Positions 3,001 to 52,296 of a stretch of 64,000 bases of DNA are shown piece after piece. The notes under the pieces are model-generated. The model saw nothing but the letters and a program-made list of their open reading frames with translations, searched no databases and was not told the DNA's origin. Position numbers and translations under genes: made by a program. Origin of the DNA: Paragordius varius. Lineage: Eukaryota > Animalia > Nematomorpha. The stretch lies in assembly GCA_964247055.1 (NCBI GenBank), contig OZ176056.1, positions 3,224,001 through 3,288,000 on the forward strand. The letters run 5' to 3'. Position 1 is the stretch's first letter; every line of letters begins with the position of its first letter.

Positions 3001-4219
3001 TTTTTATATATATTAGTTTTATCCGTAATTCATTTATCATAAAATATAATATGTTAAGTTATACCATTTCCTATGCAGCTTTTTTGAAGCAATAACAAAA
3101 GTGGTTTGTCATTAAATTTGAAATCGCATTTCGTATTTTTAGTACCAAAGGATAAAAGTTTTTCTATTATGGAATCATCCAGATCTTGATTAAAATTTTT
3201 TGGAATTTCTTGTGTGGGTATAAAACAAAATGTTTGACTGCCATCTAAAATGAATAGAACAAATTAAAAAAAGGATGATTTTAACTGCAGTAATAAATAT
3301 ATAATCCAATATTAAATTTTAATAAAAATATCAGATATATTTAATATCAGGCTAACCAGAGGTGTCCAAAACAAATGGTTTCGCCGCATTTCTCAGAAAA
3401 TTAATGGGCCATATATTAGGTGTTCACAAATATTTTATTAGATTTTTGAAAATGTAATACAATATAACGTTTTTTTTCTATTTTTGGCCTGACAATTGAT
3501 AAAACTTATTTAAACAATTTGTATAAAAAACCATCAATTTAATTAAGATTTGTGAGCATGTGCGGCCAGCGTGTTGGACACCCTCGAGATAAACATGTTA
3601 ATTTGGAGGTTTTTAGGAGTCAAAATCAAGCTTTTATTGAAAACATTTGTTAGAGAAAAAAATAATAATATTAGCATACCCGATTGGGATGGTAAAGATT
3701 CCATAAAACTGTTTAGTCTCAGACTCATTATATCTAGTGTTGTTCCATCTGATTATATTTTAATTGTTAATTAATTGACAAATAAACCTAAAGAACGATT
3801 AATTTGAATGTCCAAAAATTGCAGAGGCACATCCAACGAGTCCGACTGAAGGGCAAAAATTATATGACCTTTAATTTACGAAAAACTTATACCATTTAAA
3901 TATGTAATATCAGCATTAACAACATTTATTCCAATATGGATTTGAAGCTCATCGTTTTCGGTATCCAATTTAACTTTTAATTGGTCAGAACATTGAATAT
4001 AATTTATAGAACTGAACAATGATTTATATAGCTTTGGAAACACTATGGATATCTAAAGATTAATAAGCTATACTATATTTGATCCTACAGTAATATTCAA
4101 TTGATACTCTTTTAATTGAAGAAAAATGTTATTTTCATCATTTAAAAATGCTTCGTTATCCTAAATATATGCAACAAAAATACTGTATTATATATGGAGA
4201 ATTGCTTTTTTATAATCAT
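1..4219 (-). CDS. Uncharacterised multi-exon protein, 3' end runs off the window
   Basis: Phase-consistent GT-AG exon chain: 4219-4184, 4160-4074, 4052-3893, 3868-3788, 3748-3680, 3244-3065, 2676-2540, 2216-1915, 1618-1323, 1210-1100, 702-589, 141-<1. It includes ORF-track pieces 1911-2210, 1294-1629 and 539-721. CxxC motifs present (SCPACK, QCLKCH). No family recognised. The start codon at 4219 and completeness of the exon set are uncertain. Confidence 0.6.
3357..3586. mobile_element. Degenerate hAT-type MITE in an intron of gene 1
   Basis: Ends CAGAGGTGTCCAA ... TTGGACACCCTCG are imperfect inverted repeats. Flanking 8-mers AGGCTAAC/AGATAAAC match at only 5/8. Confidence 0.5.
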
Positions 4220-4431
4220 TTTTTCACAATTATTTTTAAATAAATGTGATTTATCGATACATTCGCATGTACGGATGGTCAAAAATTATTTGTTGCAAAT
4301 TTTCTAATTACGATATATATACTAATCAGGTATATTGGTAACGTCTACAATTTGCTGTAATAAGTTTATATAGCGCAGTTCACTCAATATATCAATAATT
4401 ACATATTTGGAGTTAGCAAGATAGGCATGCT

Positions 4432-6595
4432 TAAGGTGACCAGACGTCCCGCTTTTGGCGGGACAGTCCCACTTTTTCACACTTTGTCCCGCGTCCCGCT
4501 ACGTTTTTGAAATGTCCCGCTTTTTCACGATTATATAAAAAAACTTTCTTTTTAAATACATTTAAATTTCTTATAAATTTATTTTTTTATCCCTTTAAAT
4601 TTTTAATCATTCGTTATCTTTAAAATCTATATCAATTTTAAATTAAAATTTTTTATTTTAAAATTAAATATATTTATTTCTTTCAATTTATATCATATGG
4701 TTATACACTTTGCTACTCCTACTTCTACTGCCAACATTATCAAAAAAACAAATTAGTACGACAAATCGGTAGCTTATACGTATTCAGAAAATTAAGGTAA
4801 TACAATATTTATACTAATGTTAGTTTAAAAATATGAGCACAAAAAGAGTTTGTAAATTCAACGATAAATTAATGAAAGAATTTCTTTCTTAAAAAAACGT
4901 AGAATGAATCATTTATTAATGTTCTTTATGCGAGGGGGTATTTACCCTAGCACATGAAGGCAAGCATGATATTACAAAGCATATGGAAACACAGAAACAT
5001 ATAAAATGTTTAAATATGGCGGCATCATCTTACAAAAAAAGCGAATTCTAACGAAAAACCGCTTTTGGAGAGGAAGATAACAATTTGGCACTAGCCGAAG
5101 GCGTTTTATCTTTTAACGCCGTTAATCCCAATCATTCCTTTAGATCCAAAGATTGTACCTCACAGGTTAATCGTACCTTACTCAATAAAATTTACATGTG
5201 CCCGTACAAAGGCTGAAGCCATTGTATGAAATGTCCTTTCGCCACATGCATTTTCTGAAATACAAAAAGATTTGCTGAAAATTAATTTCATATCTCTATA
5301 CTCTGATGAATCAAATCACAAGGAAATAAAATTCTTTCCTTATAAATTAAAATTTTAGATTATATTTCTCTACCCGGTGAAAAGACATAATTTTTATTTC
5401 AATAATGAATATTCTAGAAAAAAATAATTTAATAGACAAAATAATCATCGCATATTGCGCTGACAACACTACGAACTTCGGTGGAAAAGCAAGGATAGGA
5501 ACAAAAAATATTTTGGCGTTAGGTGTGCAGCGCATATATGACACAATGCTATTCAAACAGCTAATGATTTGTTACGCTTAGATGTAAAAAACGTAGTTGT
5601 TATAATATATTCCTATTTTACGGTACGCGTTAAAACGCTTAAAGAATTCTGTAAAAATGCAGTGGTTAAATATCAAAAAATCTTGGATATTGTAAAACTC
5701 GTTGGTTATCTCTTTTGCCAGCTATCGAAAAATTTTTAAAATGTATGATCCCTTAAAATCCTATTTTTTATCACAGGACAAATGCCCTACAACTTTGGAT
5801 AGTTTTTGAAAGTGATCTTTCAAAATATTGTTAGAGTTCCTACATAATCAAGCTTTACTCTTTCAAAATGTTATTAAATTGAAAGGAGGTAACGAAATTT
5901 CGGCAATCGAAGTAGCCAATAAAGTTAATAACCTAAAATTCCAATGTCAAGAAAGGTTAGAAAATAATTTTATACCATTACCACCCAATATTAAAAATAA
6001 TTTAGAAAAACAAGGTTCCTGTATCATATAAAAATGTTTTATACAAACTGTATAGAATTGGAAGACTGGACGGTGCAATTCAATGAAATTGATCATTTAC
6101 ATTGGATAACATTAAAACCATAATTTAATTAGTGCGATGTTCAAAAATCATTTGATTACATCTGCATCTACCAAAAATTCCCAAAAATCTTTCAGAAAAT
6201 GATCTTTTTTCCGAACTATACTATGTTCCATACAATAATATTTTAAAAATTGTAAAATTCGCACTATCTTTAGCTAGAACCAACGCTGCTACTCAGCGCG
6301 TTTTTCCACAGTAAATTAGGTGTGACATCGGAAAAATTAAATTTAAATATAAAACTTTAAATATGAAGACTTCTACAAAATTTTAAAAAATGATGACAAT
6401 CTGCTAAAACGCATTCCCTCAAATAAAAAATATACCAAGGAATAAAATATGTTATATTTATAATGTATTTGTGTTAAAAAGAAATATTACAATAAATATT
6501 TTGTACAAAAATTTTTGGTTGTACCCCCCCCCCCATGTCCTCCCCCTTTTCTCGGATTTGTCCCGCTTTTTCCTTCAAAAAATCTGGTCACCTTA
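4432..6595 (+). mobile_element. hAT transposon (Blackjack-type termini), copy 1, defective
   Basis: TIR TAAGGTGACCAGA ... TCTGGTCACCTTA with subterminal GTCCCG motifs. Perfect 8-bp TSD GGCATGCT at 4424-4431 and 6596-6603. Internal decayed transposase. Confidence 0.92.
4833..6445 (+). pseudogene. hAT transposase remnant (copy 1)
   Basis: Colinear with 8015-9827 but has many stops, frameshifts and deletions. ORF-track fragment 5828-6031 (EFLHNQALLFQNVIKL...). Confidence 0.85.
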
Positions 6596-7741
6596 GGCAT
6601 GCTGCTTCTAGTTTTGCCTAAAATTTCTATAATTTTTGCTGATTGACCCATATAAAATATAGTTTATTTACCATCATTCTTAATTATAGATGCTCTATCC
6701 AAAAAATCTAATTTACGTTGCAAAACAAAATATTTGTTAATATTAATTTGGGTATTTTAAAACAGCTTCTGAAAAAACACAAAAAGGCCGAGATTGCAAT
6801 GCAAATCCCATAAATGACCTAAAAAGTATTTTTAGAAATTTTACTTGAAATTGAATTCAAATATGCGTGCTTGCAATATTTAAAATTGTATAAATTAAAT
6901 TCCAATGATTTTTGTGGAAAACGGAACTTATATTTAATTAAAATTTAATAAGGAACTGATTAAATAGAATTTTTAGCCTAACCAAATTATTATAGAATAA
7001 AATATTTCAATATTTTACAGTTGTACTTACCAAAAATTTTAAGGCCGCAAAAAATATCCATCTAGTCTAGTGTTATTGGATGCACCGTAAAATACCTATA
7101 AGAATTTCGAGGCTGTTGACAGATTTGCAGGGGCAAAAGCACTTAAGAGTTGCATGCGCCCCATGGTCCGTAGGTATCCAAACTCTAAATTCCATAAAAC
7201 TCATTTTAACAATTTTTAATGTATATGATAAATTATTTAAATAATTTTTGATTCATAACTAGCATATAATTTAAAAGTTATCACACAATCTGGGCGTTTA
7301 TTCGTTTATTTTAACAATACCTTCCATTTTAGAGAAGTCTAGAAATTTTAAACTTTGAGAGCCGTGTATGACTTAAAATTTTATCATAATATTCTTTTGC
7401 TTTCTAAATATACATATTATATACATTATATTGACAAATGAAGCTTCTATACAAATTTTTATTCAGCATAATGTTTATTTTTTTGCGGTTAACATAAGAT
7501 GACCAGACGTCCCGCTTTTGGCTGGACAGTCCCGTTTTTTAAACTTTGTCCCGCGTTCCGCTACGTTTTTGAAATGTCCCGCTTTTTCACGATTATAAAA
7601 AAAATTTTTTTTTATACAAATAAAAATTTTTTTACAAATAATTTTTTTTTATTTTAAATTAAAATTTTTTTATTTTTAAATTTAATATATATTTCGAATT
7701 TATATCATATGATTATACACTTTCCTTCCTACTACTACTGT

Positions 7742-8001
7742 CATTATTATGAAAAAGCCAAGTTACTAGATTAAAAGACAAATTGATACCACAAATCGGT
7801 ACCTTACACGTTTATTCCAGAAAATTAAGGTAATATAATATTTATTATACTAATATTTTAGTTTTATTACTTGCCAACATTATTAAAAAGCCAAATTAAT
7901 ACCACAAATCGGTAGCTTAAAAGACAAATTGATACCACAAATCGGTACCTTACACGTTTATTTCAGAAAATTAAGGTAACTTAATATTTATTATACTAAT
8001 A
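7742..8001 (+). repeat. ~125-bp imperfect tandem duplication in the 5' subterminal region of copy 2
   Basis: The block 'aaagacaaattgataccacaaatcggtaccttacacgtttatt..cagaaaattaaggtaa..aatatttattatactaata' occurs twice here and once in copy 3. Confidence 0.75.
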
Positions 8002-11460: not shown

Positions 11461-11677
11461 TTAAAGCCTACAAAGTGTATATAAGTATTAATTGTATCCC
11501 CAGATTTTGTATACTGTGTTATGTTCCCTCTGTAATATATTAAGTTATATTAAAAATTTTAAGATCATCTAGTTAAAATATTTTATTAGCAGGCATACTA
11601 TTAAACAAATAAATTAATTCAAGGCATTTTCAACATATTATAGAAAATGTGATTTTTTAATACGTTCGCGTTTACAG

Positions 11678-13745
11678 ATGCTTCCAAAAATCACGTTTCG
11701 CAGCAAAGTAAAATCTATTATCGCCCACATTAATTCCACTGAAAAATGTCTTCAATCCAGATTTATATATAAGAAAGTACCATAATTCCTTAATATTTTG
11801 TTAATAGCTCATCAGGTTTATAAAAACAGTAGTAATATTGGCGTTTACGTAAATTTGCCTGATGAAATTGAGACTCATTTCTTTATTGATCATATACTTT
11901 CCACAGGGAAGCGCTGTTATATTCCTCACATAGTTTTTTTTACAGCTAATATTGTAGGATTTTTCTAGCGACACAAATCACATGAAAATGACCTTGTTAA
12001 AACATATAAATGAACTGCTCAGTGGTACAAAAAATAAATACAAAATTAAACAAATTGATGGAACTGATATAAAAGATGTATATGAAGAAGGACAAAGTAT
12101 ATATTTAATGGCATAAATTTTCGAATTACAGCAATAATAATTTTTGGAATCGGAATCCTATAATAATAAAATAATATTTGGTAAACTTTTCTAGTGCTTT
12201 TTAGTAAAAATATTATTTATCAAGATTATTGATTTATGTTTAACGGTACTCTACGGTCACCCATATAAAAAAGTCATATGACTTTTTGATAATATTTTTA
12301 GAGATTTATATGGTAACAACCATTTTCGACTTTAATATTAATTACAATACACTGTAAAGTATAAACTCTGTATAAATACCGCGTATAATAGACACAAATG
12401 TGAAACTGCAAATGGCGTCAAAAATCTTAAAATAAGGGTAAAATATTGGAAAAAACTGGAGATTAAGGTAAAAAATATAATCAGCACTAAAAACCAAGGA
12501 TTATCTTCATCCTTCGCAAACCTTTAAACTATTGATTTATGTGTTTTACAAGTCGAAAAACATCAGGCCTTATATTTTGGATTACCCTTGGTGTTTGATC
12601 TATGAAATCTTTAGGTAAAATTGGAAATTTTTGTCCAAATCTAAGCTTAGATTTACAGTAGAATCCCTTTCCCTAATGCACCGATTGTAGGATAAATCCG
12701 CATTATACCTTTTTGGAAACACAATTTAATTTTTTTGATAAAATCCTTTGAAAAAAATTATAAAAACTGATTTTAATTTTTTTCATAATTCTTTATGAGA
12801 ATTTCATAATGACCATAATCCGTTTTTTTGGGAAGACGTTTTGAACAATTATAGCTTAAAACTAGGGCGTTAATCGGAGAAATGCATATCATCACCACAA
12901 GTTAATTTGTTATTAGGCCTATTTATTTAAACTCACATAGGGAGGTAGGTTAGAATCTTCTAACATGGCAACGCTGCTTCTCTCTTGAAATTTAAAAAGG
13001 GGTGCTTTCTTGTTATAGTTATCTTGAAATAATTGTATGACAGACTATGCTTTTTTTTAACTCTGTGATTTTAAGGGCTATTTAGTGAAGTAAAATTAAA
13101 CATGTAACTTCCGCCCTTTACTACTATTGAACAAATGGTTTATTTAAGATAATTTTATTTAACATACTTTGGTTTTCCGAAAATGGTTGCGCTCTACAGA
13201 TGGTCATGTTTTGCCCAGCGGATAATTTGAAAAAATATTAAACTAAATTTGCCTGGGGATGCCTGTAAATTAATATAGTCTCATAACTTGTGCCAAATTT
13301 TATGACTTTTTTTGTACAAAATGTCTTTTTACACGCGACAGGGGCACAAAAATGTCGTTCCAATATCTTTGACTTTATAGTAAATTTTTTTTATTACTAC
13401 ACGTTTTCCGTAAAATTGTCTCAAAACTAAAATATTTTTAGCCATTTTTTTCGTAATTTTATATGTATATATCAGGTTTAGATATGCTCATTGTACCTGG
13501 GTTGGCTTTTACCCCGTCAGGACATCGATTGGGTCGTGGAAAAGGGTTTTATGACACATATCTTCATCGAATAAAACAATTGTCGCTAGAAAAATCTAGA
13601 AGTAAATCATATAAAAACTAAAGTAGATGCAAATTTAATCAAAATGCCATACTGTATTGGAGTTTGTTTTAAAGAATGCGTATTTCCAGAAATTCCGGTG
13701 GAACCTCATGATTTCGTCGTATCAGAGGTGTTATATATGCCTTAA
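11678..13745 (+). CDS. MTHFS: 5-formyltetrahydrofolate cyclo-ligase (methenyltetrahydrofolate synthetase)
   Basis: Exons 11678-11776, 11801-11932, 11958-12096, 13476-13601, 13624-13745. Motifs [61 protein letters not shown] and [16 protein letters not shown] are colinear with MTHFS. The intron 1 acceptor is problematic (see findings). Confidence 0.93.
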
Positions 13746-14162
13746 ATATGAATGCGCACAGCAAACCCCATGTAAAAAGTCGTCTGGGATGGTGTGTGGG
13801 ATATGGTACCTATTGTACCTGTTCTAATCATTTAATTCAATTTAATTATGTATTTGTTTAATAAATTATATATATATTTTATTAATTTGTTTTAGCATAT
13901 TTTGCCTAATATTTTTCTTACGATCCTAATCCGTATTATTGTGATAAAATGTTTTTTGGTTGTAACAGGTGATCTACCGACCCTTTAACAATTTTTTAAT
14001 GCCTGAATTTCAAAACTTTAATGACTTTTATTCTCAAAATCTCTTAAAAAAAGCCACTTTTTTGAAACAATCCAATATGTGATTTTCGACTTAATTTTAA
14101 TCTGAGTTTTTCAACTTGGTCGAAACGATGATTGCAATGGATTTATAGAATATTATTTGAGA

Positions 14163-14419
14163 AAGTAAAAACTGAAATTATACGGACAAAACGCAAAAAT
14201 ATAGACAATTTTTTTTCTAAAAGACAACAATACTTTTTAAATCTTGATTTATTTCAATATAACACATTTTAATGACAAAGTGTGAAATAAAGATATATAA
14301 TACTAACATTATCAATTCTAATTGTAACTAAATAGCTTATATGGGAATGGTTTTCTTTTATAAAAAAATATTTGTCTTTATATTTTCACGTTTTGCGTAT
14401 AATTTCGATTTTTACTGTA
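14163..14419. mobile_element. Tc1/mariner-type MITE (CAGTAAAAA family), left end decayed
   Basis: AGTAAAAACTGAAATTATACGGAC ... CGTATAATTTCGATTTTTACTGTA. Same family as 51516 and 53361. Confidence 0.75.
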
Positions 14420-14840
14420 ATAGTTTTCAATGTTAAGATTTGTTTTTGAGATTTCTTTGTGTGGTTAATTAAAGTAGGGAGTTATAATGTAGCTTGTATT
14501 AAAATTTTTTAAAGTTGTATCGATATTGAAGCACTCATAGATTTAATTTATAACTCTAAGGATGATTTATGGGCTAACTCAAGAGAGTTGCACATTTGTT
14601 TGGAACTAATAATTTACAAAGGACATATTATATATGATATAGACAATCCAATTTGGGTTTTAAAAATATATTCAGGAGCCAGTAATAAATATCCCCAAGT
14701 TAATGATGTATGATAAATGTCCGATATAAGATTTACGCATTAGTTATATTATTATATATAATAACTAATTTTTATTCACATTAATGTATAAACCAATAAA
14801 AATTTTGAAGTCAGAATTTCTATTCAAAATTGGGTTAGAG

Positions 14841-21597: not shown

Positions 21598-23034
21598 ATG
21601 GTGGAAAATAACGAGGAAGTTTTCGACACATTTTTTCAATGTCTAATCTGGTTAATACTATTTTTCCTCGTATTCTCAAAATGGATTGTGATTTCATCCG
21701 TGGGTTTAGGGTTTGCCTTATACTTACATAATATTGTTTCGAACAGCGCTTTAGCGGACGAAAAAAATGGCGGACTAAAATCAAGAGCATCAGCAGACAA
21801 ACGGATAAAATTGGAGGCAAAAAAGAAGAAACTAGAAACATCTCAATCAAAAAAAGTTATTTCAAAAGTTGAAACTAATCCGAAACCATGTTCTAAAAGC
21901 GATTTACCCATGTCACTTGCGACCTTATGTCACCAAAAATTTTTTTTACAAGCAAATAAACCTATAACTAAAGTTATTGAAAATAAAAATATTGTTGACT
22001 GTTTCAATCGTGATAATCCCTGTAAAATATTTATGAATCTCGATTATACCCATGAAAGCGTTTCAGAATCGTGCCAAAGACTTGAGAACAATAATAATAA
22101 TTTATTATATTTTGATGATTCGGAAAATGTTCTTCAAGGACACCGTAGAAAGGTAAAAAATGTTTTTAGCAAATGCGATAATACAAATTTCGCACTTGCT
22201 GACGAAATTACACAGGTAAGCAAAACTTTTAATAATGTTAAAACATGCAATTTATTTACGCATAACTATACCATTACTCATAATATTAAACCTAAAAATA
22301 ATAATGGATGTACTACTAAAACAAAATCAAATTATCAAAAACTATTTTATAAAATCGGAAAATCCTACCAGGAGGAATTCAATAAAATTTCTTTTTTTCG
22401 GCAATCTTTAAATGATAATTTTATATTCTACAAAAAATTTTGGAATCCAGATAATATTTCACATGAAAATTTCATAAATAGCCGAAAGCTAAAACAATAT
22501 GTTTGTAAAACATTATTACGTAGCACTTCAACACACGTAATAAATTATTACAACAGCAATTTTTGCAAACATGAAAATTTCCATGATGTTTCTTTGAGTC
22601 TTGATACATTATTATTTATGGATGAAAAAAACCGACAAAGTTATAAAAATATACATCCACTAAATTCCACACCGAAAAGGCTTGATATAAATAGCTTGCA
22701 TAATTCAATTTTGCCATTTTTTGACAAAAAACAGCCGAAATATTTGGAAACATATGGAAATAACTTTTTTGATTACAATTCTACCTTTCGAAATGATTTA
22801 TCAATTAGTTTGGATGAAATATTTTATAAACCGATTTCGACTCCTGAAAAGCCTTTAACGTTATATCGTTCAAAATCTATTCTTTTATTAATGCCATCAT
22901 CCGCAAAGAAACCATTGAATACAGGTAATTTTACGCTTAAAATTTTTTTAAAACAATTATTTTACATTTATTTTATATGGATAATTTTTTGCATACGGAT
23001 AATTTTAAATAATATTTCATGCGTATTTCTATAA
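21598..23034 (+). CDS. Orphan ~450-480-aa protein with N-terminal hydrophobic segment(s) and an Asn/Lys-rich tail
   Basis: 478-aa ORF in ~1.4 kb of AT-rich DNA. Hydrophobic stretch FFQCLIWLILFFLVFSKWIVISSVGLGFALYL. A likely splice donor (ACAG|GTAATT) near 22925 means the true C-terminus may differ. Confidence 0.7.
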   Translation: MVENNEEVFDTFFQCLIWLILFFLVFSKWIVISSVGLGFALYLHNIVSNSALADEKNGGLKSRASADKRIKLEAKKKKLETSQSKKVISKVETNPKPCSKSDLPMSLATLCHQKFFLQANKPITKVIENKNIVDCFNRDNPCKIFMNLDYTHESVSESCQRLENNNNNLLYFDDSENVLQGHRRKVKNVFSKCDNTNFALADEITQVSKTFNNVKTCNLFTHNYTITHNIKPKNNNGCTTKTKSNYQKLFYKIGKSYQEEFNKISFFRQSLNDNFIFYKKFWNPDNISHENFINSRKLKQYVCKTLLRSTSTHVINYYNSNFCKHENFHDVSLSLDTLLFMDEKNRQSYKNIHPLNSTPKRLDINSLHNSILPFFDKKQPKYLETYGNNFFDYNSTFRNDLSISLDEIFYKPISTPEKPLTLYRSKSILLLMPSSAKKPLNTGNFTLKIFLKQLFYIYFIWIIFCIRIILNNISCVFL

Positions 23035-32188: not shown

Positions 32189-35100
32189 TATATTATAGAA
32201 ATCAATCGAACATCAAGATAATATAATTTCAAAATCATCTGTTTGTTTTACAAGTGAATATGTGTTCTATCCTAAATTCTTAAAAATTGAGAAAACTTTG
32301 AAAACTGTTAAAAGTTTATGAGCGATTTGGTTATTTACCCTCCATAGTTGCTACAAACATACATTTTTTTTCCAACTAAATTGCTCTTTCTCCTAACATG
32401 CCTAAATAGGATCATATGTTTTTGCCTTTGTTCATTCGCCTTTCTAGTCGTTTAATTGCGTTTAGACTATTTTAAAGACACAGATTAACAAATAAATTAC
32501 GCGTTTTTTTTAACGCATTTATTATTGTTGGACCTAATGTGTACAAATGCGTTTTTTTAAAAATTTTGGATATCAGTAATGTTAAAATTTTTAGTTTCTA
32601 GTACACCGCCATTTATCATTTCGGTATTGAATAAAATTTGTATGATTCATAAACAAATTTAATTTTTGGTGTGCGCAGTGTAATGTGTTTTTTAATTATT
32701 TTCCAATTTTCAATTATTTTTACTGATAAATATTTTTTAATTAAATTTTCTTCGGTAAAAACTAAAGAAAGTTATATTTCAATATTCTTTCAAATATAAA
32801 GTTAATTACCTATTAACCGTCTATTTTTTCAATGTATTACCCCATATAATAAAATTATAAATTTTATAAAAAATTATATAGTTATATTAAATTAAATTAT
32901 AATTTTTATATGCTACTTTAGGTTAATACCCTAATTTTTTTATAATTTTTTTTAATGTAAAAATTTAAAAATTATCTTTTTTATGTGTGGGAAGATTCAC
33001 ATAAATTTGTAATAAACCACAAATTATTTTAACATTTTTTTTTCATTTTATTACCAAATGATTTTGATTTAAATTTTGGAAAAAATAAATATAATATTAT
33101 AATATTATGTGCGAAATTCTTAAACAATCAACAACTTGGCATCTGTTTTTACATCTAAATTCCCCAATTGTGGTATCTTCATATATTATTATAAAATTTT
33201 TATTTAATTTTTATTTGAAATTATATAATTTTCATTTGAATTATAAAAGAAAAAAGATAAAAATAATGTAATTATAGTTTAAAATGCATATCTGAGTTTA
33301 CGTTACCTATATTTAAGTTTTTTTAGTTTAGTTTTTATTTTTCATATTTTTAACATATTTTAATATTTTTTTTCTAAGAAATATGTATAAATGGGAATTA
33401 AATGGTCTAAAAATGATTGAAAATTTAAATTTTAATTTTATTAAATATTTTAAATTCAAAGCGGTGCAAAATGGCAAAACCATATTTAAGTTAATTTACG
33501 TATATTCACTCTCCTCACATATAATTTTGATAAAATTATACTAAATTAGTAGAGTACATCTTTTCTAGTATATATAATATATAATTTTCAAAATATTTGA
33601 ATATAAAAATGATATATATATATATATATATTTTGTGAAAACATCTTTTAAAACCATTTAACAATAATTTTAATTTTTAATGAAATATATATTTTATACT
33701 CAAGCTAGATAAAATATATCTGTGCATCATTCCTAAAATCCCAAAAGATTAATTTTGTGCGAATATCGTATAATTTATTTTACTATTAAAATCGACTTTT
33801 ATTATCTGATATCTATTGGCCCAATTTTTTTTCCATATTAATATATTCTATTTTTTTCTATAAAGGAAAATGATATTTCAAATAACTTTAAAGTTAAAGC
33901 AAAAATGAATTCACGGAAAAAATATTAATTAAATTTTCTCCTTTGTTATTGTTACAGGTTTTGTTGAAATCCATTTATTTTTTAATATAATTATTTTTCA
34001 CCTTTATTTGCTTTTGTGTTTCAAAAAAATAAACTTTTAAATGCAGAATAATAATTTAATTGTGTAAATGTAATGTGTGTTAATTATATTTTTACCTGTT
34101 TAAAATATATTTGAAATAAAATTAATTTTAATATTCCTTGGTTTTTTCATAATCAATGAAACTAAAAAAATACAAAAATTCGATTCTTATTCGATTGCTG
34201 TACGCGCCACCGCCAGAAAGTATGCCATTATTTTGAAATATTTTAAACTTCCAAAGTATCTATGCTTAAACCTAGTTCTTATAGTTTATACTTTTTATGA
34301 CTTATATCGGAAATATCCTGATTACATTTTCTTAGGGTAAAACATGGAATAGATATGCTCTGTTACAGTAAAAACTATAATTATACAGACAAAATGTAAA
34401 ACATAAAAACAATTTTTTATTCAAAAGACCGCTAGACCTTTTCAAACCGTGTTTTTTAAACTATTTATACAATTATAATATATGTATATAATTGGGGTTT
34501 GCCAATTAACATTCCTTATTCTGCAATCTTAAACGATAGTTAGCTGAATAAAATTAAGGTTTAAAAAATATGGCAGACGAAAAAAATTTCCTTGAATTTC
34601 TACATTTGTCTATCTATATATTATTGTAAACTCTAACAACAGTTTTCATAAACTCTGTATTTAAATTATATGCTCCATTATAATTATATATAGAAATTTA
34701 TTTTATTTGATTATTTAAATAATTTAATTTAAGTTAAATAAAATATTATTAACGGTCAAAAGGCCATTTAGCCAAAATGAATGCATGCTAGTCATATGAA
34801 AAAACTAATCCTATATTTTTAAAAATCATTTTAATTTTTAAATGTAGTGTGTACTCTTCTGAAATATTTCTTAAATATAATTTTATTATTAAATGTAAAA
34901 AATTTAGGGTGATTAAAAAAAACAGTTATATAATGGTGAATTGGTTTTTATTTTACCCTTAGATATTATTTTAGATGATATGCCACAATAGTTTGATTTT
35001 CGCCATTAATTTCCTTTTATTGAAAATTTGAGGTGGCATTAATTATGATTATGTTTAAAATATTTGAATTACTAGTCCAAAAAAGATAAAATCTTTATAT

Positions 35101-36562
35101 TTTTAAATCATTTAATTGGAAAATTTATTTAATTTAATCTTATTTACTCAATCTTAACAATATCCAAGGTCGGAAAAATTTTATTTCTAAGCCCACGTTT
35201 TCTAACGATTTTTATTTTCTAACAATAAAATTCGATTCCGTGTTGGGATCCCTTTTCAATATTTTCCAATTTTTAAAAAAATGAATGAATACTAAACTAG
35301 ATTTTTAGAATTTTATTTCTATAAAGTATATATTATGCACCTATATACACAATTATCTTATTATATTAAATTTTCATAACAATATAAAAGATGAGGGATC
35401 TACTATGTAACTCAATCATATCAAATTACTTGCAATTAAATAATTACTTATGAAACACGCTATATTAAAAAACCTATTTTATTTCTATAAAAAATTACTT
35501 CAACCGTGTGAATAAAAAATATTATAAATAAAATAAATTATAGAAATTGACCTTAACATAAAAAACCACAATATGATTTTCTTTGTTTATATATTCGGAC
35601 AGTTGTTTTGCTTAAAAAACGTAAACGAAATTTTCTAAATAATAAATTATTTTAAATTGGATATTAACATATTGAAGATGATAAATACTTTTTTATTTAA
35701 TTAAAAAATCTTTTAATTATACATTTTTCTTTTAGTTTTTTAAAAAATATGCACAGCTAATAATATACATATTTATATATAGGCTAAAGTTTTTTATCAT
35801 ATAGTTTCAATTAATGTTTTTGTGTTTTAATACTTATAGAAATAAAGTATGGTTAAAACTATACAATGCATAAAAACGGATTAATTATTATATATAAAAA
35901 AATGTATGTAAGTATATATCTAATTTATAATGATAAAATAATTCTAAAATTCCAATTTTTATGTTAAGAAAAAAAATATGATTTCTGCATATTTTTATGT
36001 AGCTGTATAATTCTGCCGTTCATCAGTTTGTAAATGATTAATATTAAAAAAATGTAAAATTTGAAAAAAAAATTTTTTATAATTACAAACAATGTATTGA
36101 TATATGTTTATATATTTATAAATGTATTTAAATTACATTTTCATTATGCATTCATATATAACAATGGATATTGGAAAAAAGAATTATTTTTTTCGCTTTA
36201 TACTCTCTACCTAAAACTAAACCAATAATCATTTTCTGTGCTGTATTTTATAATTCTTATGTATAGGGAATTTTTTAGAAATATTTTTTATAACTAAGTT
36301 TTAATTTAAAAAAGCGCGTGAATTTGCGTTTTAAATCCTGTTCATAGACCACTACAAGGCTAAATTTTGTTTTCATTTCTTAAAACAAACAGAAAAAGTT
36401 GTTTTGTCCATACTTATTTAGATCATTATTATACAATAACTTTGTCGCCTTTTTTTGTATAGTTTAAAACATATACTTTTTATTTCGCTTATTGAGATTA
36501 CAACATTTTGATTTTATTTTTTCTTTGTTCTCTGCTCTATATTAATCAATGCTGTATTCTAG

Positions 36563-39500
36563 GAAATCGATTTTATCCACCATCACCAATACAACAATCT
36601 CCCACAGAATTTGAAGGCAAAAATAAACGCAAAAAAAATTCCAATCAAAATGACAAAAGCATCAGTAGTAATAATAAAAATCATTACTTTGATGATAGAA
36701 AAGATATTATCCATACCCAAAATAATTGTCTTTTGAACGAAACTTTAAATGGACATTCAGACGATGGATTGTCCAACACGCCACCAAGCTTAGATTTTTG
36801 TCATGATGAAGAAATAGTTATCCGGAGTTGTGATGTTAACCCTAAAAATTCTTACATACAAAACGCGCAAAATTGTTTAAAACCTACGTGTTCTACCCCT
36901 CCTTATAAATATTATTGTAATGGTATCGGTTCCCCCAAAAATGGAAATGTAAATGATTCTGGATTCGAAGAATCTATATATGTTCCTCAACAACACTCTG
37001 CCTCAAACGGTATTGAACAGTCCTTAAATAGCGAACTCCTAACAACAAACGATAAAATATCAAGGCCACAAAAAAGCATCTCCCCCATACCAATCCTTAC
37101 AAAGTATACGGAAAAGCCATTTAACCATGCATTCGATCCTTCATTCGAACCTATTAGAACAGGTAAATCAACTGATATTTCCGAAAATTGCATAACCACT
37201 TCCTCCAGTGATAAAACAGAAAATTCTTCCCTTAAAGATTGTTTGTTTGAGCTTGAGATTATAGAAAAGTCACCCGTCCCTTCATCATTAAACAGTAGTC
37301 CTGAACCGCCCTTTTTATTGTATACGGAAAGCGAAAGCAATTTTCTAAATCAGCCTTTTAAAACTTCAGGTATTCCAATTGTTTCAACTGAACAAGAACA
37401 TAAAAATTTTAGTTGTTCCAACAATATAGGACACCAGTTTGAAAACGAACAGGATTTAGTGATTCCAACTACTATAACCAAACAAACAAGTCTCCATATC
37501 TATGCTGATAAAGCTATAAGCAATGAAACATTTGAACAAGACGACACTCGTAGAGTTATAACTGATTCACAATTATCAAAACCAATTCCAGCTCGAATTC
37601 CATCAAACATTCAAGATTACCAAGTTGAAGTCTTGTCTGAAGCTACTTGCCATCTAATCTCACCCAAACAAGTTAAATGTATGTGTTTTTTTTTGTTTAT
37701 TGATTTAAATTTTAAAGGCCATTATAAGGTTTTTGTTGTAAAATATGTCATTTTAACTCAATATATATATTTATACTTATTATGCCGTTTATAGTTCAAC
37801 GAATTGATACCGAAACTTTGACACCCATAGAGGATCATTTAGTTGATGTTGATGATATTAATAATAATACTTCTACCTTTCCAATCTCGAACCCTGTTGG
37901 AGATAATAACTACTGTTCTCAATCAAACTCACCTATTTTTGATCAAAAAGGATCATCAAATCCTTTACACATAAAATCAACGTCTTTCGCTAAAGTCATA
38001 GCTATAGGACAAAATCCATTTTTAGCCTTGGCTCGGGCGACAGCACACGCTACCACCATTTCCTCGGCAAAAGCAACGTTTGAAACTATGAAAGTTTTAA
38101 ACTCTGAAACCAAAAATAATGAGGTGGTGTGCAATCAACCGAATGGTAGCCCAACAAAAAAACCTCCTGGAACAGTTATAACTGGACGACGCCTACCTAT
38201 CGCTGCTAAGAAGACCATTGTAAAACCTTTAGTCAAAACGAGCAGCAGCTTAAATGGTAATAGTACAATGACTAAATCGGTAAAAATGACATCACCGCTT
38301 AAAAATGGTACATGCAAAGAAACAAACGATTATAATACAATTGAGAAAAATAAAATTTCAGCCACAAAAAACGGTCATTGCGTACCCAAGAATGAAAAAA
38401 ATGGGGCGGCATCAAAAATAACGACAACTAAAAAAATGGATTTCGAAAATGCAGAAACTAAAATTCCTAAATCAAACCAAAATGGTTTAAAACATAAAAG
38501 CACTTCGAGCAAAATCTTGACAAATGACAATGTTTTTGCCGAATTATCCATCAAAGTTTCGGCTTCTTGTAAATTAAGATCATCACCTCATCATACCACC
38601 AGCCTTAAAAAAACTAATAATGGCAATCAAAACAATTCGCAACCTAAACAAAGTGATTATCAAACTAATAATATAGTTAAAGGTGTTAAAAATTCACAAA
38701 CTATACTAAGCCATGATTCAAAAAATGCACAAAATGAAAAAATCAATAATACTGTAATACAGTCACCATCAACTGGATTAGATACTATGGAAGCTATGAA
38801 CAAAAAGATAGTAACTGAAAATATTATAAAATCAACAGCTTCTATGCCAAAAATTCAAGGTTATGCTCAAGCAATTAAACATGCTCTCGATTTAACAACT
38901 TCTTCACAAGAGGCACAAAACAATGGCGAAACAACCATAATAAACGATCAAACTGATTTAGATAACATTGAACGTCCATCTAGTCGATCGGTAACATTAG
39001 TGTTTGAAGACGATTTTCAAGAAAATAGCACTCCTACCCTCAATAAAGATGATGATTCGATAAAAATACCCAAATTATATTTGATCAATGGGTCACCCCT
39101 GGAAAAAACGATTCAAGGCCTAAAAGAATCCGATGTTAATTACAGTCTCCATGCACAAAATGTTACGAATGAATCTTTAACTTCTTCGGTGACAAATGAA
39201 GCAAATATGGTTACAAGTCAATTGTCAGACATTATTGTGGTTGGTAATAAGAGCACTACACCCTTCCTAAAACCTATATTAGTTAATAGCGGTCATAATC
39301 ACTCCGTAAACTCTCAACAATCCCACGTTGAAAATCATAGCTTGCATTCTACTACTGATGATCAGGCTATTCAAAAAGCACCAACAATGGTTAAACCGGC
39401 AAAAAGAATAACATTATCTAATGATGTTATTGAACATGAAATACCGTATGAAGATAGAGCTGGTTCTTGGTTACCTGGACCGCCAGAATATGAAGATGAA

Positions 39501-42500
39501 TGTTCGGAATCGCCTATTCCTCAGTCATTAAAACAAGCGGAAGGTAGATTACTTGGTGTCAGAGGGAAAACATATGCACCTAACAAACTTTTGTATGAGA
39601 AGAAAGGATTGATTAATACCGCACCAAAATTAACAAAAACACAAATAATACTCCATGACAAGGGGAGAGATTTAGATTTAAATCATGAGAACAAGGCAAA
39701 GACATCACTAGAAATAGTGAAATCGAGCGCACTAACTAACAATACCAATATGATCAAAGAAACCATTATAAATAAAACAACAGCAGCTGTGTCGGAATCA
39801 AGGGATAATACGATCGTTCCTAAAAACGTATCAACAAATAACTATTGTCCCACCAAAGAAACTCAAAAAGGAGGATTTACAGGGAAAAAATGTCAAAATT
39901 ATGTCCTTAACACTAATGAAAAGCACAATACCACCCTTAACAACGAATCAAAACCGTTGAGTAATTCCATAGTTGTTTCTAAACCACCTCTACAGAAAGA
40001 AATGCATCCCATAGCTATAAATACATCAAATCAAACACAGCCAAGAATCTTGACTTCAACAATCAATCCATATGAGGCAATACTTAAAAATTCAGTTAAA
40101 TCCAATATGTCTTCTACACTCTCTAAAGTTAACTCAGTTTCTTTAACAATGGCAAAACTTGATCCAATTGATATAGATGGTATTCGTAATGAAAGAAAAA
40201 CCGTTAATCAAAAATACATGGATGATACATATTCAAGATGTCAAACACACTCAAAAGGTTTAAACAAAAAAATGAATATTTCCAATCTAAATAATTCGTT
40301 TGATTGTGGAGAGATGCGACAACCATCCCCTTCTCAAACATTAATTAAACGATTAAAACAAAAATATATCCAACACCATAATAATAATAAAATAGATAAT
40401 AATGGTTTATCAAAGAATAGAAGCGATACAACAAAACTTCTGATGAATACAACTTTGCCTATCATCCACGATTTTTCGAATCATTACGAAACCGCAAAAA
40501 CAGAAAAATTGGGCCACAGTTTACAATCCCATCCAGTTATCCACAATTTAATGTCCCGTTCCTTGTGTGATATCTCAAAAGAGGTTGATCCCCACGGTTC
40601 AATTAACCAAGATGAAAATTTTAATTCTATTACCGCACGTTTAAAGACTCAGGCATTGTTGGATACGGAATTCACAGATATCCTGAAGGAATCATTTCAA
40701 AAATTGCGGGGTCAAAATAACTCCAAAAAATTGTTTGCCAATATGACTGACCACCATTTTAACGTTATAACCGTACACGCCCCCAATATGACTGAGAAAA
40801 TGGACCAATGTAACAACGCATTTACATCCCATTACCCACTTAATACCATGAAAAAACGTTCAATGAGTTTGGGTAATGTAATTGGTCTCCTATCTACTGG
40901 TGGAACTAAAACTAAAGATGTTAAAGTAATAGCGACAAATTCTTCGGTTATAACTGGTTCAGGGCGGCTTGATACAAATAACCGGTTACTGACATCTGCT
41001 GTCACCTTAAATGACATGGAAATGGGTGAAGGTGTTGACTTACCGCTAAATACGCTGCAAAAGAGAGCTGGTAAATCCATCAATGATAGATCATCTACAA
41101 CGCTTTTGGGTACACATAGGGCTTTAACACTTCAAACTAATTTAGATGATATCCTGGCACAAATGTCGAAAGATAAAACCCCTGTCCACTTCAAAAGTTT
41201 GGGGAATTTAAATGATGATCAAAATGCCTCTAACTCCATTGATAAAAAGCATAAAAAAGATGTTAAAAGTTCCCATAGCTCACACTTTGCAAATGGTTTT
41301 GTTAACAATGGTTCGACAAACATAATAAACGAAAGTACAAAAGTCAATGATATGGCTCAACACATTTTACAAGCTACATCTAACCTAAACATCCCAAGAT
41401 GGTTATCTACACTATCTCTGGGCCCTGCTAAAACCAAAGATGACACGTATCATTTTAAAAGCCCTTTCAGACGTATAAATGAACGTGGTTACGAGCCTGG
41501 CGATTATAAACAACAACATCGCATTGATGATAGCATTGATATTGAAAGTAGTTTAAACACTAATTCATTTGATACAGCATCTGAATTCGCCCTAAGCCGG
41601 GAACATAAATTGGGACACTTTGAGAGAAATCAACAGGGGATTAGGTATACACTACCAACCCATTTGAGTTTACCAGATAGACTAAGGGATTATTCAAAGA
41701 CAGCACACGATGCAATAAATTTGCCAAGCGATAAAACAGACACCACAACAGAAAAGGATATCGATATCAACAATTTTAATATTGATACGAATGATTTGGT
41801 CAGTAGCGTTGATTTTTCCGTCGACACCAATGATTCCGAAAATATGGCAACTGGAAATTCGGAAACCAGGTCTAATACAAATACATCATCGTACAAAACT
41901 ACTGAAAGTCACGTATTATGTCCTACTGTCTACAACAAAGATTTGATCGAAGGTTCGCTAAATGAAACTACTGAAGGTACAAACATGGACAATATACCCG
42001 GTGATTCAAGTCAACAATCATTTATTTCATATGATGATTCTAGCCATCCTTCCGAAACAAATCATTATCAGAATTCGTCGTCTGATAAAAATTATAAAAA
42101 AATCATAAGTAGTAATGGTAGTACAACACATTCAATCGATTCCACCAACCAGGGTTTGGATTCAAAACTATTTTCCCTGGGTAAAAGCAAGTATAAACGC
42201 ATGAAAAATAAATCTAAACAACACAACGGTTCGGCTTCATTTAACCTAAAAACGCAAACTATTGTCAAACTTAATTCCATGGAACGACTTAATATACCCG
42301 TCTTAACAGATGAAGACATGCGTAGCAACTCTCATGATGGATCTCACAAAGGAAATGTTAAAAATTTGAGATCTTTGTTTGAAGAGAATAACTCGGATAC
42401 AAATAATTCAAGCAATCAAAAATTTTCAGCCTACAAAGCTATATGGAACAGGGCAAAAATTATAAGTCAACATTCATTTTCCAAAAAAGCGTATGAGAAA

Positions 42501-43214
42501 TCACCCAACCACCCTACTAATGCAAAACAAAATGGTAACGTAAACAATTTGAAAGTGGTGAATGAAAATTTAAATTTAAATGGTGAAACCGGCTCGACCG
42601 ATGATATGTTGTCACATTTAAAATGCCCTAGAGAACTTTACATATGTGAAGAATATATTGCTAAGAAAAACGATTCACTAAATTCGAGATCCTATACTAA
42701 TTCCGATGCACAGAAATCCCACAATAAAAGTAAAGAAGGAATTGAACAAAAAAATGAACCCAGTAATCAATATAATAATAATAATGTTTCCTCCTTAAAC
42801 ACAAGTGGTGTTACAGATTTAGATTACTCTTCAACTCATTGCCTTGATACCTCCTTCAAAATGAATGGAATGGTAGGTAATAATGAATCAACACACAATT
42901 CAACAGAAACTACTCATAAAAATAATCATAAAATTAACGGGATCGAAGCATATGATGAAAAAAATGATGCACCCTTTATAAATTATGAAAATGTTAATCA
43001 ATATCTCGCATTAAACACTATACACAATATTCCCAAGATTGAAAAGAATGAATCAACTGCAAACATAAACCATCATGGAATCTCAAATGATGCCTTTAAT
43101 AATCCAAAAACAAAAATGGATATCGAAACCAAACCAAAAATTATTAGTAAAACAGTTTATCTCAAAAACTCAAAAACATTGCTTGGGAAACCGCGGTTTG
43201 AAACAGCCGTTTAA
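36563..43214 (+). CDS. Last two exons of a very large, low-complexity (N/S/T/K-rich) protein with a C-terminal class I PDZ-binding motif
   Basis: ORFs 36508-37794 and 37782-43214 join in frame through a phase-1 intron at 37679-37794 (AAAT|GTATGT ... TTATAG|TTCAA). A phase-1 acceptor at 36562 implies unidentified upstream exons. Ends ...LGKPRFETAV*. Confidence 0.8.
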
Positions 43215-47555: not shown

Positions 47556-47826
47556 CTACAATATTCAAGCATTTTAACATCTATATTTTCCACATCCAGG
47601 GGTAACAAATCAGTAGCTGTTTGAACGTTGTGTATCTGCCAATAATGTTTTGATTAAGATTATTCGCTAAATTGTTAAAAATATTTTTGTGCCGCTTCTT
47701 GCATCACGCAGCGCACTTTGTGATGATTTCGTCTTTATTATTTTTTTCTAGAATATTAAAATCACTTCACCCTTTGTTCGTGCACATGGAAATTTATTGA
47801 ATAAGGTACAAACCTGTGAGGTACAA
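47556..47826 (-). repeat. Inverted transposase fragment shared with copy 2
   Basis: Nearly identical to ~10411-10689 and reverse-complementary to blocks at ~46991-47060, 47374-47425 and 47445-47512. Confidence 0.88.
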
Positions 47827-49439
47827 ATTTTTTTATATTTATAATGTATATGTGTTAAAAATAAATAAATATTACAATAAATTTTTTGTATAAAAATTTT
47901 TGGTTGTACCCCCCAATGACCCACCCCCTTCTCAGATTTGTCCCGCTTTTTCCTTCAAAAAATCTGGTCACCTTATGTATAAGCAATGGGTAAAAACAAA
48001 AAAGAAATGCAATAAAAAATTCAAAAAGAAAAGAAAATAGAATACAGAAAAAGTAACAACGTGTGCCATAAATCATCAATTTTAAAATCATTTTAATGTA
48101 GGAAAATTTTTCTACATTTCAAATTGGGTAAAAAATAAATATTATCAATAAAAAAATTTAAATATCAATATGGTCATAGGGTAATTTTGAAGCACACTTT
48201 GGGCCGCATGCGGTCCGCGGGCCGCGATTTGAGTATCACTGCTCTAAATCCCTAATAATATCGACAAAGTCGATGACGTGTGATAGGCAACAGTTAGTAT
48301 GTTTTATTATTAATTTTAAAAATGCATTTTCTCCTTCGAGACTATTATTAAAATGGAAAATATCATTTAGCCAATGTTTGGTTAGTTTAAAATAGCCAAT
48401 ATTTTGCATCAATCAGATCAATAGATGGAAAATTTAAAATAAAACCATAAGTTATTACAGACTTTAAAATCTTTCAAACAGTTCCGACCGTTAAATGTAA
48501 TAAGTTAATTCGGAAAGACCTCACGATAAATATCGCAACATAAAAATTATCCTACCTCTCTTGTTTATGCCTTACTGTAAAAATTCGGCAGCTTAGAGTA
48601 GCTATAATAAATTATGTACTATAAAAGATTTCTAAATTAGCAGTAAAAGCCAAAAGATCATGACAATTTTCTAAAATTAATAAAAAATGGTGTTTTTCAC
48701 GGAATTTCGAATATATTTTAATCATATTTTTAAATTATGTTTGTTAAAGTATGCATATATTTTCCCCAACTTTGATACTTTAATGCTGCCTATTTCAAGT
48801 GAAATTCAGGTAGCCAAACAATATAAAAATCAAAGTGTTTTTATGACATTTTTATAAAGAACACCGGCAGTAGAACCGAACCTATTGTTTTTTGACAAAA
48901 ATTTCCGGAATTTAGCTCGCAATTTTTATTCTGTATCAATAGAGTTGGTTTGATGTCTGAGAAGGTAAACAAACGCTTTATTTTTAGTTGGCATTACATT
49001 ATCAAAACTATTGATATTAATAGATAATAACGCTTATGAATAAATCAATGAGATAGCTAATTAATTTTAAATGCATCCTATATTTTTATATGTCAATTCT
49101 TTATCCATTTATCAAAAAACCCAAAAACGTTCAGTAGTTAAAAACTAAAAATTACAATTTCAAATATTAATATTTTTATGATGCATATAGAAGCCACAGA
49201 ATCATATTTTGGTTATATGTTTTAATTTGGGTGAATATCTGCCCCTAAAGCGGGAAGAAACCAAATACGCCACAATTTATCTAAATTTTTAAAATTTATT
49301 GTTAACCCCAATTTAAAGACAAGAACATACAATTTAACTGATTATACCTTTAACATTTGCATTATATACCTGGGTTTTTAAATTTTTGAGTTATTTTTAA
49401 TTATTAATAATTCATACATTGTATCATATTACGACTTGC

Positions 49440-52296
49440 ATGTTGCCGGTCGGCCGAAAACAGATATTTAATTTGTGCATTTTGCCAAAGAGGTTTGCCA
49501 ATTAATTTATGTTTTAGAACGGCTTTTTACTACAACTATACTGGTAAAAAGGAAGATGAATTTCCTTGGCGCATAGCTGATGATTATCCATCAAAAACGA
49601 AAGTTGGCCCTGAACGTGACCTAGTAAATTTTCCGCGACTCAATCAAAATACTTATCCTCCTTTAACTCGATTAAATTTTTTACCGAATAGATGGTTTGA
49701 ATTTTTTTATCCAAAAACCGGAGTAACTGGTATATATTTATAATCGAATATAAAATTATTCAAATGTAACGCAAGAAATATTTTTAAACTAAACAGCCAT
49801 ACTTTCTAAACCTTAATTTTATTAAATGTATTGTTTTTTGTAACATACCGAATAGAGATTTAAATTGGTTAGACCCTCATTATAGTTTATATTGCAATCA
49901 TTTTGATTAAATAAAAATTAAGGAAATTATGTTTACAAAAGTTGTCTATAAGTTGATAGGTTTTGTCTTACTGTTTATATTTTTATTTTCCTCTCATAAC
50001 AGTAGATAACTTTTGACTTTTTAAGTGGCGCATAAACATAAAAAGTCAAATTATACAAAATTCTTAGGTGGAATTATAATTTTTATTTCAGAATTACTGT
50101 TAGAATGATAGTAAATACCAGAAAATGCAAGAAAACTCGGGTGGCAGAAATTTTTGTTGTCCACCAGTGTAATGCATACATAAAATCTACATTTTGTCTT
50201 TATATTATCTTAGGACCTTACCTGTTTTTGGGCGGGTTAGTTACAACGCTTTTGCAAAAAGAAATATGGGTTGTTGAGGCAGAATTCCTGGGAGGAACGA
50301 TTATGTTCCTAACCATATTTGGTTTTATGAAAAAATATGGAAACACCTTGAAAGAATATTATGCTAAGCAAGTCCAGGTTTTTATCCACAATTTTTACCC
50401 TCATTTATTTGTTTAATTAATAATGTTTAAAACAGGATACAAAATTATATGGTACTCTTTTTACTGTACGATTTATGGATTTTCTATTTTTAAATTTTAC
50501 ATTGAATTTACCCAATTAGACAAAATTTGAAGAATTTCTAAAAAATTGAAAGTTTTAAAGATACATATAATTTATATTTATTTCTATAAATTATTACTGA
50601 CATGTTTGAATATTCGGTGAATATAAAATTATTGTATAAATATACATTATTTTTTTCGAATAATTATATTATAGGATGATATAAAGGAAGCACAGGCCAT
50701 ACACCAAAAACATATTGATTACTACAAGGAACACATTGAAATCGAGAAAGTTAAGCAACGTGAATCCCAAGCCCCCAAATATATAGCTGAATTTCAAAGG
50801 GTAAATAATTATTTAAAAGAAAATTCTTTTTTTGATTTGAATCGCAAAGTTTAATACAGAGGTCTAAAGTCCCGTGAAAAATTTAAGAAGAACTAACATA
50901 ATCTAGACAATTTACGTTAACAAATTATTGTTGAATTGTTTCTTCCATATTTTGGTAGCGAACTAGCAAATATTGGTGGTATAAATAGCAGATATATTGA
51001 CTTTGTTAACAGTTTTCGGTTTGAAATCTAATTAAAAATTTTATTTATGCCAAAAATACATTTTTTGAATGCCTTCGCCCGGTTTTTTGAGTAAAAAATG
51101 CGTCCGGCGAAGAAATACGTGTAGGAAATCTTTGGTTTAAATGTAATAATTTATAAATTTAATACCTAAATGTAATGGTTTATAATTTAACGACAAAAAT
51201 ATCTAATTGATAATGTTGAAATTTAGACTTCTACTTTAATAACCCGTATTCAAAATCGTATCTCCTCGCTATGTAAGAAATTAAGTAAGTCGTGGTTTAA
51301 AAACTCGTATTATACATATTTTACGCTAGTTTTTTTTTTATAAGATTTCTGTATTTTTTGTAGGATAATGTGGCATTACAACAAGAAGCCTTGTATAGAG
51401 AACGACTGCTTGAATTATACCAATCTGTGAAAAAGCGTTTGGTAAAAATATTTTTACGATAAATTTTTTGAAAGTTATTTAGCAAAAATTTGATTTATAT
51501 CTTTCAAAATGATATTACAGTAAAAATTGAAATTATACGGGCAAAACGTATAAATATAAAGACAAATATTTTTTTTAAAGACAACCATATTTTTGAATCT
51601 TAAAAAATATAAAATAGACATGTAAATTGGTAGCCCAATTAATTTATATAGTATACGATTGTAATTAAATGCTTTAATAGAAATTAAGGTTTGATAAAGT
51701 ATCATTGTCTTTTAGAAAAAAAAATTGTCTTTACATTTTTACGTTTTGTCCGTATTTCGAATTTTTACTGTATAAAACTCATTTTATACATAATCTAATG
51801 CAACCATAAAATAAAGGTTATAATTAAAGGTATAATAATTGATTTTTTAATGTATAAAATAATTAAACATTTTGGCGGAAAAATTATTAATATTAAGACG
51901 TTAATTAGATGATTGCTTTAGATATTCATCTCAATTTTTTTAAATTTAAATTTTACAAACCCTCCCTAAATATTTTTATTTGTATTTAAATAAAATAAAA
52001 AAAATGTTTTTAAAATTGAGTTTTATATATTTATTATTTTTTTTAATGTCAAAGGATTACCGTGTTGAATTGGCTAATATACGGAGAAAATACGAACATG
52101 AAAATATGATTGATTGGATTATCCAACAAGTCTATAAGAGTATTACGCCTCAATTGGTATTATAAAAAAATTTTTTTCAAACAAAAAAAAAGATTTTTAT
52201 AATATTTCTATGAAAAATATTATTGTATAGCAAAAAGAAGCCCTTCAAAAATGCATTGTGGATCTAAAGCATTTATCAAAAACGGCACAGATATGA
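49440..52296 (+). CDS. ATP5PB: Mitochondrial ATP synthase Fo subunit b
   Basis: Exons 49440-49492 (tentative), 49518-49729, 50214-50377, 50675-50800, 51364-51441, 52055-52156, 52231-52296. Motifs [61 protein letters not shown] and QKCIVDLK. Confidence 0.95.
51516..51772. mobile_element. Tc1/mariner-type MITE in ATP5PB intron
   Basis: TA-CAGTAAAAATTGAAATTATACGG ... CCGTATTTCGAATTTTTACTG-TA. Confidence 0.85.

Follow-up and report, generated by a model that had tools for sequence, protein, structure and literature searches.

In a 64,000-nucleotide (nt) stretch of the genome of the horsehair worm Paragordius varius (contig OZ176056.1, positions 3,224,001 to 3,288,000), hereafter the window, protein-coding genes appear to be interrupted by introns of only 21–25 nt that stand beside introns of 297–1379 nt. 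The probability that these tiny segments are genuine U2-type spliceosomal introns in nuclear genes is put here at about 0.72, judged from DNA and protein comparison. The analysis covers this one window and three genes in it: a minus-strand gene at about 3.5–4.3 kb (gene 1), the gene for 5-formyltetrahydrofolate cyclo-ligase (MTHFS, 11678–13745), and the gene for mitochondrial ATP synthase subunit b (49440–52165). The class is probably real, with MTHFS well supported, ATP synthase b plausible, and gene 1 unproven. An earlier note on this DNA had proposed 21–25-nt spliceosomal introns beside long ones in a non-compact animal genome. That proposal is upheld for MTHFS: the product is collinear with homologues, the profile scores favour it, and another hairworm, Gordionus, shares intron positions. 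It is weaker for the first MTHFS intron (I1), which lacks an AG, and for ATP synthase b, where a 43-nt intron is an option, while gene 1 and a further 39-nt segment are unverified. The contribution made here is a homology-forced MTHFS case with Gordionus-shared positions, the non-canonical I1, and a caution on open-frame arguments in this genome.

Eight segments had been claimed, and their coordinates and sizes are all correct on re-reading. Each begins with GT on the gene strand, and seven end with AG (23, 21, 24 [3869–3892], 25, 22, 25, and 39 nt); the exception is I1 of MTHFS (11777–11800), with GT...TG ends. The tiny segments start with GT followed by A or T, are AT-rich throughout, and carry A or T before the 3' AG. 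In most of them, a TAAT- or CTAA-like stretch lies 4–12 nt before the 3' end, although DNA of this composition abounds in such words. Within MTHFS and ATP synthase b, they resemble the accompanying long introns in splice-site flavour, and their guanine plus cytosine (GC) content is 18–25%, against 27–42% in the flanking exons. Long introns, also described earlier for these genes, are present as one of 1379 nt in MTHFS and four of 484, 297, 563, and 613 nt in ATP synthase b; the 70-nt lower end of the range once given for them is not seen in the three genes. Thus, four of the nine introns in MTHFS and ATP synthase b are tiny, and the other five span 297–1379 nt. Most of the tiny introns (I1 and I2 of MTHFS and the first of ATP synthase b) are found toward the 5' end of a gene that also has long introns; the fourth MTHFS intron (I4) is the exception.

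The window is strongly AT-rich (20–32% GC) and contains hAT-type transposon copies, other repeats, and few host genes. Long stretches, with 12 kb among them, have no recognisable gene. This organisation is not that of a compact genome, and an Rfam scan of the window returned nothing. Segments of 21–25 nt with GT...AG ends span 13.8% of window positions, so a single such segment means little. Six canonical cases in the correct frame would be rare by chance, at an estimated 0.05 or so each. The segments had also been said to need removal for the reading frames to stay open. Homology bears this out in MTHFS. In ATP synthase b, an upstream exon is required, and removal of either 25 or 43 nt fits. 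For gene 1, the argument consists of open frames only.

MTHFS carries the main evidence. Its model has five exons and four introns, as follows.

11678–11776, plus strand: exon 1, from the ATG to K33; gap-free alignment with the N-terminal helix of homologues.
11777–11800, plus strand: putative I1, 24 nt, GT...TG, in frame with an internal TAA stop; from the homologue profile and a Gordionus intron site.
11801–11932, plus strand: exon 2; Pfam PF01812, profile positions 32–73.
11933–11957, plus strand: predicted I2, 25 nt, GT...AG, frame-shifting; from profile scores, with a Gordionus intron nearby.
11958–12096, plus strand: exon 3; collinear with homologues.
12097–13475, plus strand: I3, 1379 nt, phase 1; Gordionus has an intron at the same position and phase.
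13476–13601, plus strand: exon 4; Pfam PF01812, profile positions 118–152, E 2e-12.
13602–13623, plus strand: predicted I4, 22 nt, GT...AG (or 25 nt, ending at 13626), frame-shifting; from profile scores.
13624–13745, plus strand: exon 5, including the stop codon; Pfam PF01812, profile positions 154–185.

Exons 2, 4, and 5 correspond to successive parts of Pfam PF01812. Homologues were collected by searching 1.8 billion representative proteins with exon 4, and a profile was built from 67 full-length homologues. The five-exon model encodes 205 amino acids, of which residues 1–203 align with homologues end to end. With 24, 25, and 22 nt removed, the spliced model scores 173.5 bits against the profile. 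At I1, the canonical alternatives of 39 and 60 nt score 160.5 and 156.6 bits, which places exact 24-nt removal 13–17 bits higher. The protein family therefore demands this exact removal despite the non-AG acceptor, and no sliding 24-nt window at I1 yields GT-AG, GC-AG, or AT-AC ends. At I2, the alternatives score 129–153 bits (20–44 lower), and no GT-AG or GC-AG option other than 25 nt spares the conserved residues. I4 scores equally well as a 25-nt intron with the same donor (173.8 bits). Extending it to 61 nt lowers the score by 3.4 bits (170.1) and loses a strand found in every homologue, whereas 73 nt gives 154 bits (19 lower). On homology, I2 is firmly predicted to be a 25-nt intron and I4 one of 22 or 25 nt, so this conserved gene would contain introns shorter than 30 nt. 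A profile of Gordionus MTHFS and the window exons retrieved no protein from this species or a close relative, and hence no transcript-derived junction peptide.

The TG end of I1 may represent a non-canonical acceptor, a recent mutation (the AG at 11815 being used, with five residues lost), or a base error.

The same scores bear on the possibility that exon boundaries have been mis-modelled, in which case the introns would be ordinary small ones (about 36–80 nt) and the coding sequence slightly shorter. Frame-keeping GT-AG alternatives do exist (43 nt in ATP synthase b; 36, 42, 57, 69–78, and 77 nt in gene 1; 39 and 60 nt at I1; 61 nt at I4). The 61-nt form of I4 costs little, and Gordionus introns measure 39–50 nt. 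However, the alternatives at I1 and I2 remove residues found in all aligned homologues, at a cost of 13–44 bits, and the 61-nt form of I4 deletes a conserved strand. Mis-modelling is thus an unlikely account of the tiny segments as a class, although it is the strongest of the rivals considered here.

Comparison with Gordionus sp. m RMFG-2023 (GCA_954871325.2) adds shared intron positions to the MTHFS case. The best match to the model is an annotated gene of this hairworm (P0058), which aligns model residues 1–203 with residues 1–199 of its 201 (E 7e-50). The two proteins are 39% identical, and the match is 7 bits ahead of the next one, a mammal; together with the shared intron positions, it gives modest support from these sequences for a nematomorph origin of the window. 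With an identity of only 39%, the two species are distant. Gordionus MTHFS has three introns, of 40, about 50, and 39 nt. The 40-nt GT-AG intron follows ...FVYNK, in the alignment column of I1, and is in phase 0 in both species. The 50-nt intron, also in phase 0, lies at most three columns from I2 and shares its phase, in a stretch where the proteins differ in length by two residues. The 39-nt GC-AG intron, in phase 1 just before ...LDLM, occupies the column and phase of the 1379-nt I3. No Gordionus intron is found at the position of I4. Gordionus thus resembles the window species in having introns at the three I1–I3 sites and phases, in an AT-rich genome rich in DNA transposons. It differs in their lengths (40, 50, and 39 nt against 24, 25, and 1379 nt) and in having none at I4. 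The simplest reading would be a lineage with short introns that were shortened further in this species, with one site grown to 1.4 kb.

The Sedlin gene, a neighbour of MTHFS in Gordionus, has introns that total 118 nt and are read as three of about 40 nt. When the surroundings of MTHFS were compared with Gordionus for synteny, no counterparts came to light for gene 1, Sedlin, or photolyase. The third Gordionus MTHFS intron (L001, about 4467–4505) is annotated at 39 nt, and the Gordionus annotation may itself be bounded by a minimum-intron setting. We take 39 nt to be the AUGUSTUS default minimum intron length. The Gordionus genome is AT-rich (27% GC) with many DNA transposons and has a BUSCO completeness of 71.6%; introns are not discussed in its description (Gordionus genome paper).

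ATP synthase subunit b provides the second, less constrained case. Six exons give a 247-residue product.

49440–49492, plus strand: putative exon 1 (ATG and basic presequence); nearest ATG, 42% GC against the AT-rich background.
49493–49517, plus strand: candidate intron, 25 nt, GT...AG, frame kept; an alternative donor at 49475 gives 43 nt.
49518–49729, plus strand: exon 2; matches PDB chain 9b0x_K residues 48–92, E 3e-8.
50214–50377, plus strand: exon 3; matches PDB 9b0x_K residues 88–144.
50675–50800 and 51364–51441, plus strand: two further exons, with boundaries read from sequence.
52055–52165, plus strand: last exon, with boundaries read from sequence.

Exons 2 and 3 give successive matches to subunit b chains in PDB. 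Since exon 2 contains no in-frame ATG, an upstream exon that supplies one is needed. Joining exon 1 requires a frame-shifting removal of either 25 nt, from a GTTTGC donor, or 43 nt (49475–49517), from a GTGCAT donor, with a common acceptor at 49517. The presequence is not conserved; therefore, homology cannot choose between the two lengths. The 25-nt version is mildly favoured because its donor resembles the others here (GTA or GTT), and a 25-nt intron is plausible at this site.

A palindromic repeat resembling a miniature inverted-repeat transposable element lies in an ATP synthase b intron (51513–51807). Its copies are found at 14128–14422, 53360–53626, and 34363–34429.

Public sequencing runs were also consulted. 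Those found comprise four DNA runs from the same species, two with other labels, and five small RNA-labelled runs under the same species name. Three of the RNA-labelled runs (X6–X8) and one foreign-labelled run (X11) were compared with ATP synthase b at 80% likeness. A low-depth DNA contig of 342 nt from X11 is identical over 49398–49640, including the 25-nt segment. Because the contig is identical there, the segment exists in independently read DNA. Depth in X11 reaches about 250 over the palindromic repeat. The species labels of public runs may be unreliable, in that RNA-labelled runs under the same species name lack a housekeeping gene and the other-labelled X11 holds an identical contig.

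Gene 1 differs from the other two in that its pieces have no Pfam or PDB match, and no homologue was found for them. Its candidate introns are as follows.

4161–4183, minus strand: candidate intron, 23 nt, GT...AG; joins two open frames, with 77 nt as the sole alternative.
4053–4073, minus strand: candidate intron, 21 nt, GT...AG, in frame with an internal stop; removal of 36, 42, or 57 nt also keeps the frame.
3869–3892, minus strand: candidate intron, 24 nt, GT...AG; removal of 18 nt or 69–78 nt also keeps the frame.
3749–3787, minus strand: claimed intron, 39 nt, GT...AG, doubtful; the frame has its own stop at 3774–3776.

The 39-nt intron had been listed together with the tiny ones. It is not needed, because the frame already stops at 3774–3776, and the piece downstream is not protein-like; it is probably not real. 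The 23-, 21-, and 24-nt introns stand at about even odds.

A 47-nt stretch occurs twice on the plus strand with 79% likeness, at 4242–4286, just 5' of the gene 1 start on the opposite strand, and at 11645–11691, reaching into the MTHFS start codon. The likeness may reflect either chance or a promoter element common to the two genes.

Several observations weigh against reading the tiny segments as introns. I1, one of the seven segments of 21–25 nt, ends in TG without an AG, and the 61-nt option for I4 is just 3.4 bits worse than the preferred one. When I2 or I4 is retained and one base is deleted nearby, the frames are open and the scores fall by 6.2 or 1.8 bits, respectively. Because this cost is so small, homology scores alone leave room for single-base assembly errors at these two sites. 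In ATP synthase b, the 43-nt alternative also keeps the frame. Runs X6–X8 gave nothing usable on this gene at 80% likeness, only one short off-target piece. For gene 1, the leads from a language model are discordant: exon c suggests a guanylate cyclase, exon d a helix-turn-helix domain that accompanies reverse transcriptases, and the tail after the 39-nt segment is not protein-like. Chance open frames in non-coding stretches of the window reach 78 codons. Among frame-joining excisions in this DNA, GT-AG is not enriched, and chains of three to five frame-keeping excisions are equally common with decoy dinucleotides of similar abundance. For these two reasons, open frames are dropped as evidence.

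These observations raise the possibility that the segments are retained, either as products of single-base assembly errors or as frameshifts and stops in decaying genes, and are bracketed by GT and AG by chance. Gene 1 would then be a decaying, perhaps transposon-derived, frame. The small cost of retention in MTHFS (1.8–6.2 bits with frames open), the defective acceptor of I1, and the properties of gene 1 (no homologue, one piece like a reverse-transcriptase-associated domain, and no excess in the decoy test) are all compatible with this account. However, at least four sites spread over three genes would each have to carry an error of its own, with GT-AG brackets in the correct frame every time (an estimated 0.05 or so per site). 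An indel cannot explain the stop codons inside the in-frame segments, and I1 falls exactly at a Gordionus intron site. In addition, MTHFS and ATP synthase b are full-length genes that are intact in all other respects, the independent contig is identical over the 25-nt segment, and the tiny segments have a lower GC content. Retention is accordingly improbable, somewhat more so than mis-modelled boundaries. A different route of removal, by DNA elimination in body cells or by ribosomes hopping over the segments during translation, is very improbable. The segments have GT...AG ends like the long introns of the same genes, and their positions are common with ordinary introns of the relative Gordionus. 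To our knowledge, neither process operates on nuclear genes of this kind.

Excision by the spliceosome thus remains the preferred reading. We infer both the removal of the segments by RNA splicing and the way in which the spliceosome would cope with them. An intron of this size would have little space beyond a 5' splice site, a branch adenosine, and an acceptor. The tiny introns may be shrunken 40–50-nt introns, which Gordionus retains at the same sites. The long introns of the same genes would have arisen by insertion of DNA, as suggested by the shared site with 39 nt in Gordionus and 1379 nt here.

Other features of the window lie outside the three genes. Two very long open frames lie at 36508–43214 (428 and 1810 amino acids, rich in Ser, Asn, and Thr), with an apparent intron of about 110 nt between them. 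A protein search found no homologue of a 478-residue open reading frame at 21598–23034. On the minus strand at 55477–56320 and 63011–63175, HR1 and SH3 exons represent the 3' half of a CIP4/TOCA-like gene; its introns are of ordinary size, and no tiny intron is seen in that part.

Spliceosomal introns shorter than 30 nt may have appeared in a third animal lineage, the horsehair worms, independently of the other two. Theirs would be the first case in a large, transposon-rich genome where such introns occur beside kilobase introns, having shrunk from introns of 40–50 nt like those of Gordionus. The chances for and against this wider claim are evenly balanced. If true, it would represent extreme intron shortening without overall genome compaction. 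The two would then not need to go together, because kilobase introns and many transposons coexist with the tiny introns here. The lineage would also offer a natural system for determining the least RNA that an animal spliceosome needs, with Gordionus keeping 40–50-nt versions at the same sites. There would be practical consequences as well. Many gene models would be broken by gene finders whose shortest permitted intron is about 39 nt and by mappers that call gaps below 21 nt deletions, and the low BUSCO scores and reported gene loss in the phylum could partly be an annotation artefact. The minimum intron length should then be lowered in annotation and completeness measures for the phylum.

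No report of tiny introns in hairworms was found in the literature, and a hairworm comparative preprint does not mention introns. Related cases are known from other animals. The microintrons of flatworms, both parasitic and free-living (a class below 75 nt), have their peak at about 37 nt; they are concentrated toward gene starts and are found together with 3-kb introns (PMC6530080). Like the segments described here, they form a distinct short class beside long introns, are clustered within the gene, mostly toward its 5' end, and are easily missed by annotation with a high minimum intron. They differ in size, with a peak at about 37 nt compared with 21–25 nt here.

Published introns of comparable size come from only two other animal groups, which, like hairworms, are parasitic lineages. 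A survey of 51 animal genomes restricts introns shorter than 30 nt to myxobolid myxozoans (median 22–27 nt) and Dicyema japonicum (Hadjez et al. 2026, PMC13644364); nematomorphs are absent from that survey. The earlier note had listed several groups with tiny introns, including dicyemids, and its list omits the myxobolids (PMC13644364). The likely branch site in those tiny introns consists of weak A residues before the AG (PMC13644364). The candidate introns of the window resemble them in having some A residues just upstream of the AG and scarcely any pyrimidine tract, if one at all. Like them, they would be GT-AG introns of about 20–27 nt that interrupt animal nuclear genes at positions where relatives have longer introns. 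In myxobolids and Dicyema, however, the tiny class makes up the bulk of introns (median 22–27 nt) in compact genomes, and myxozoans have relatively few transposons (PMC13644364). In the Paragordius window, by contrast, the same genes also carry introns of 297–1379 nt, and the surrounding DNA is full of hAT elements and repeats.

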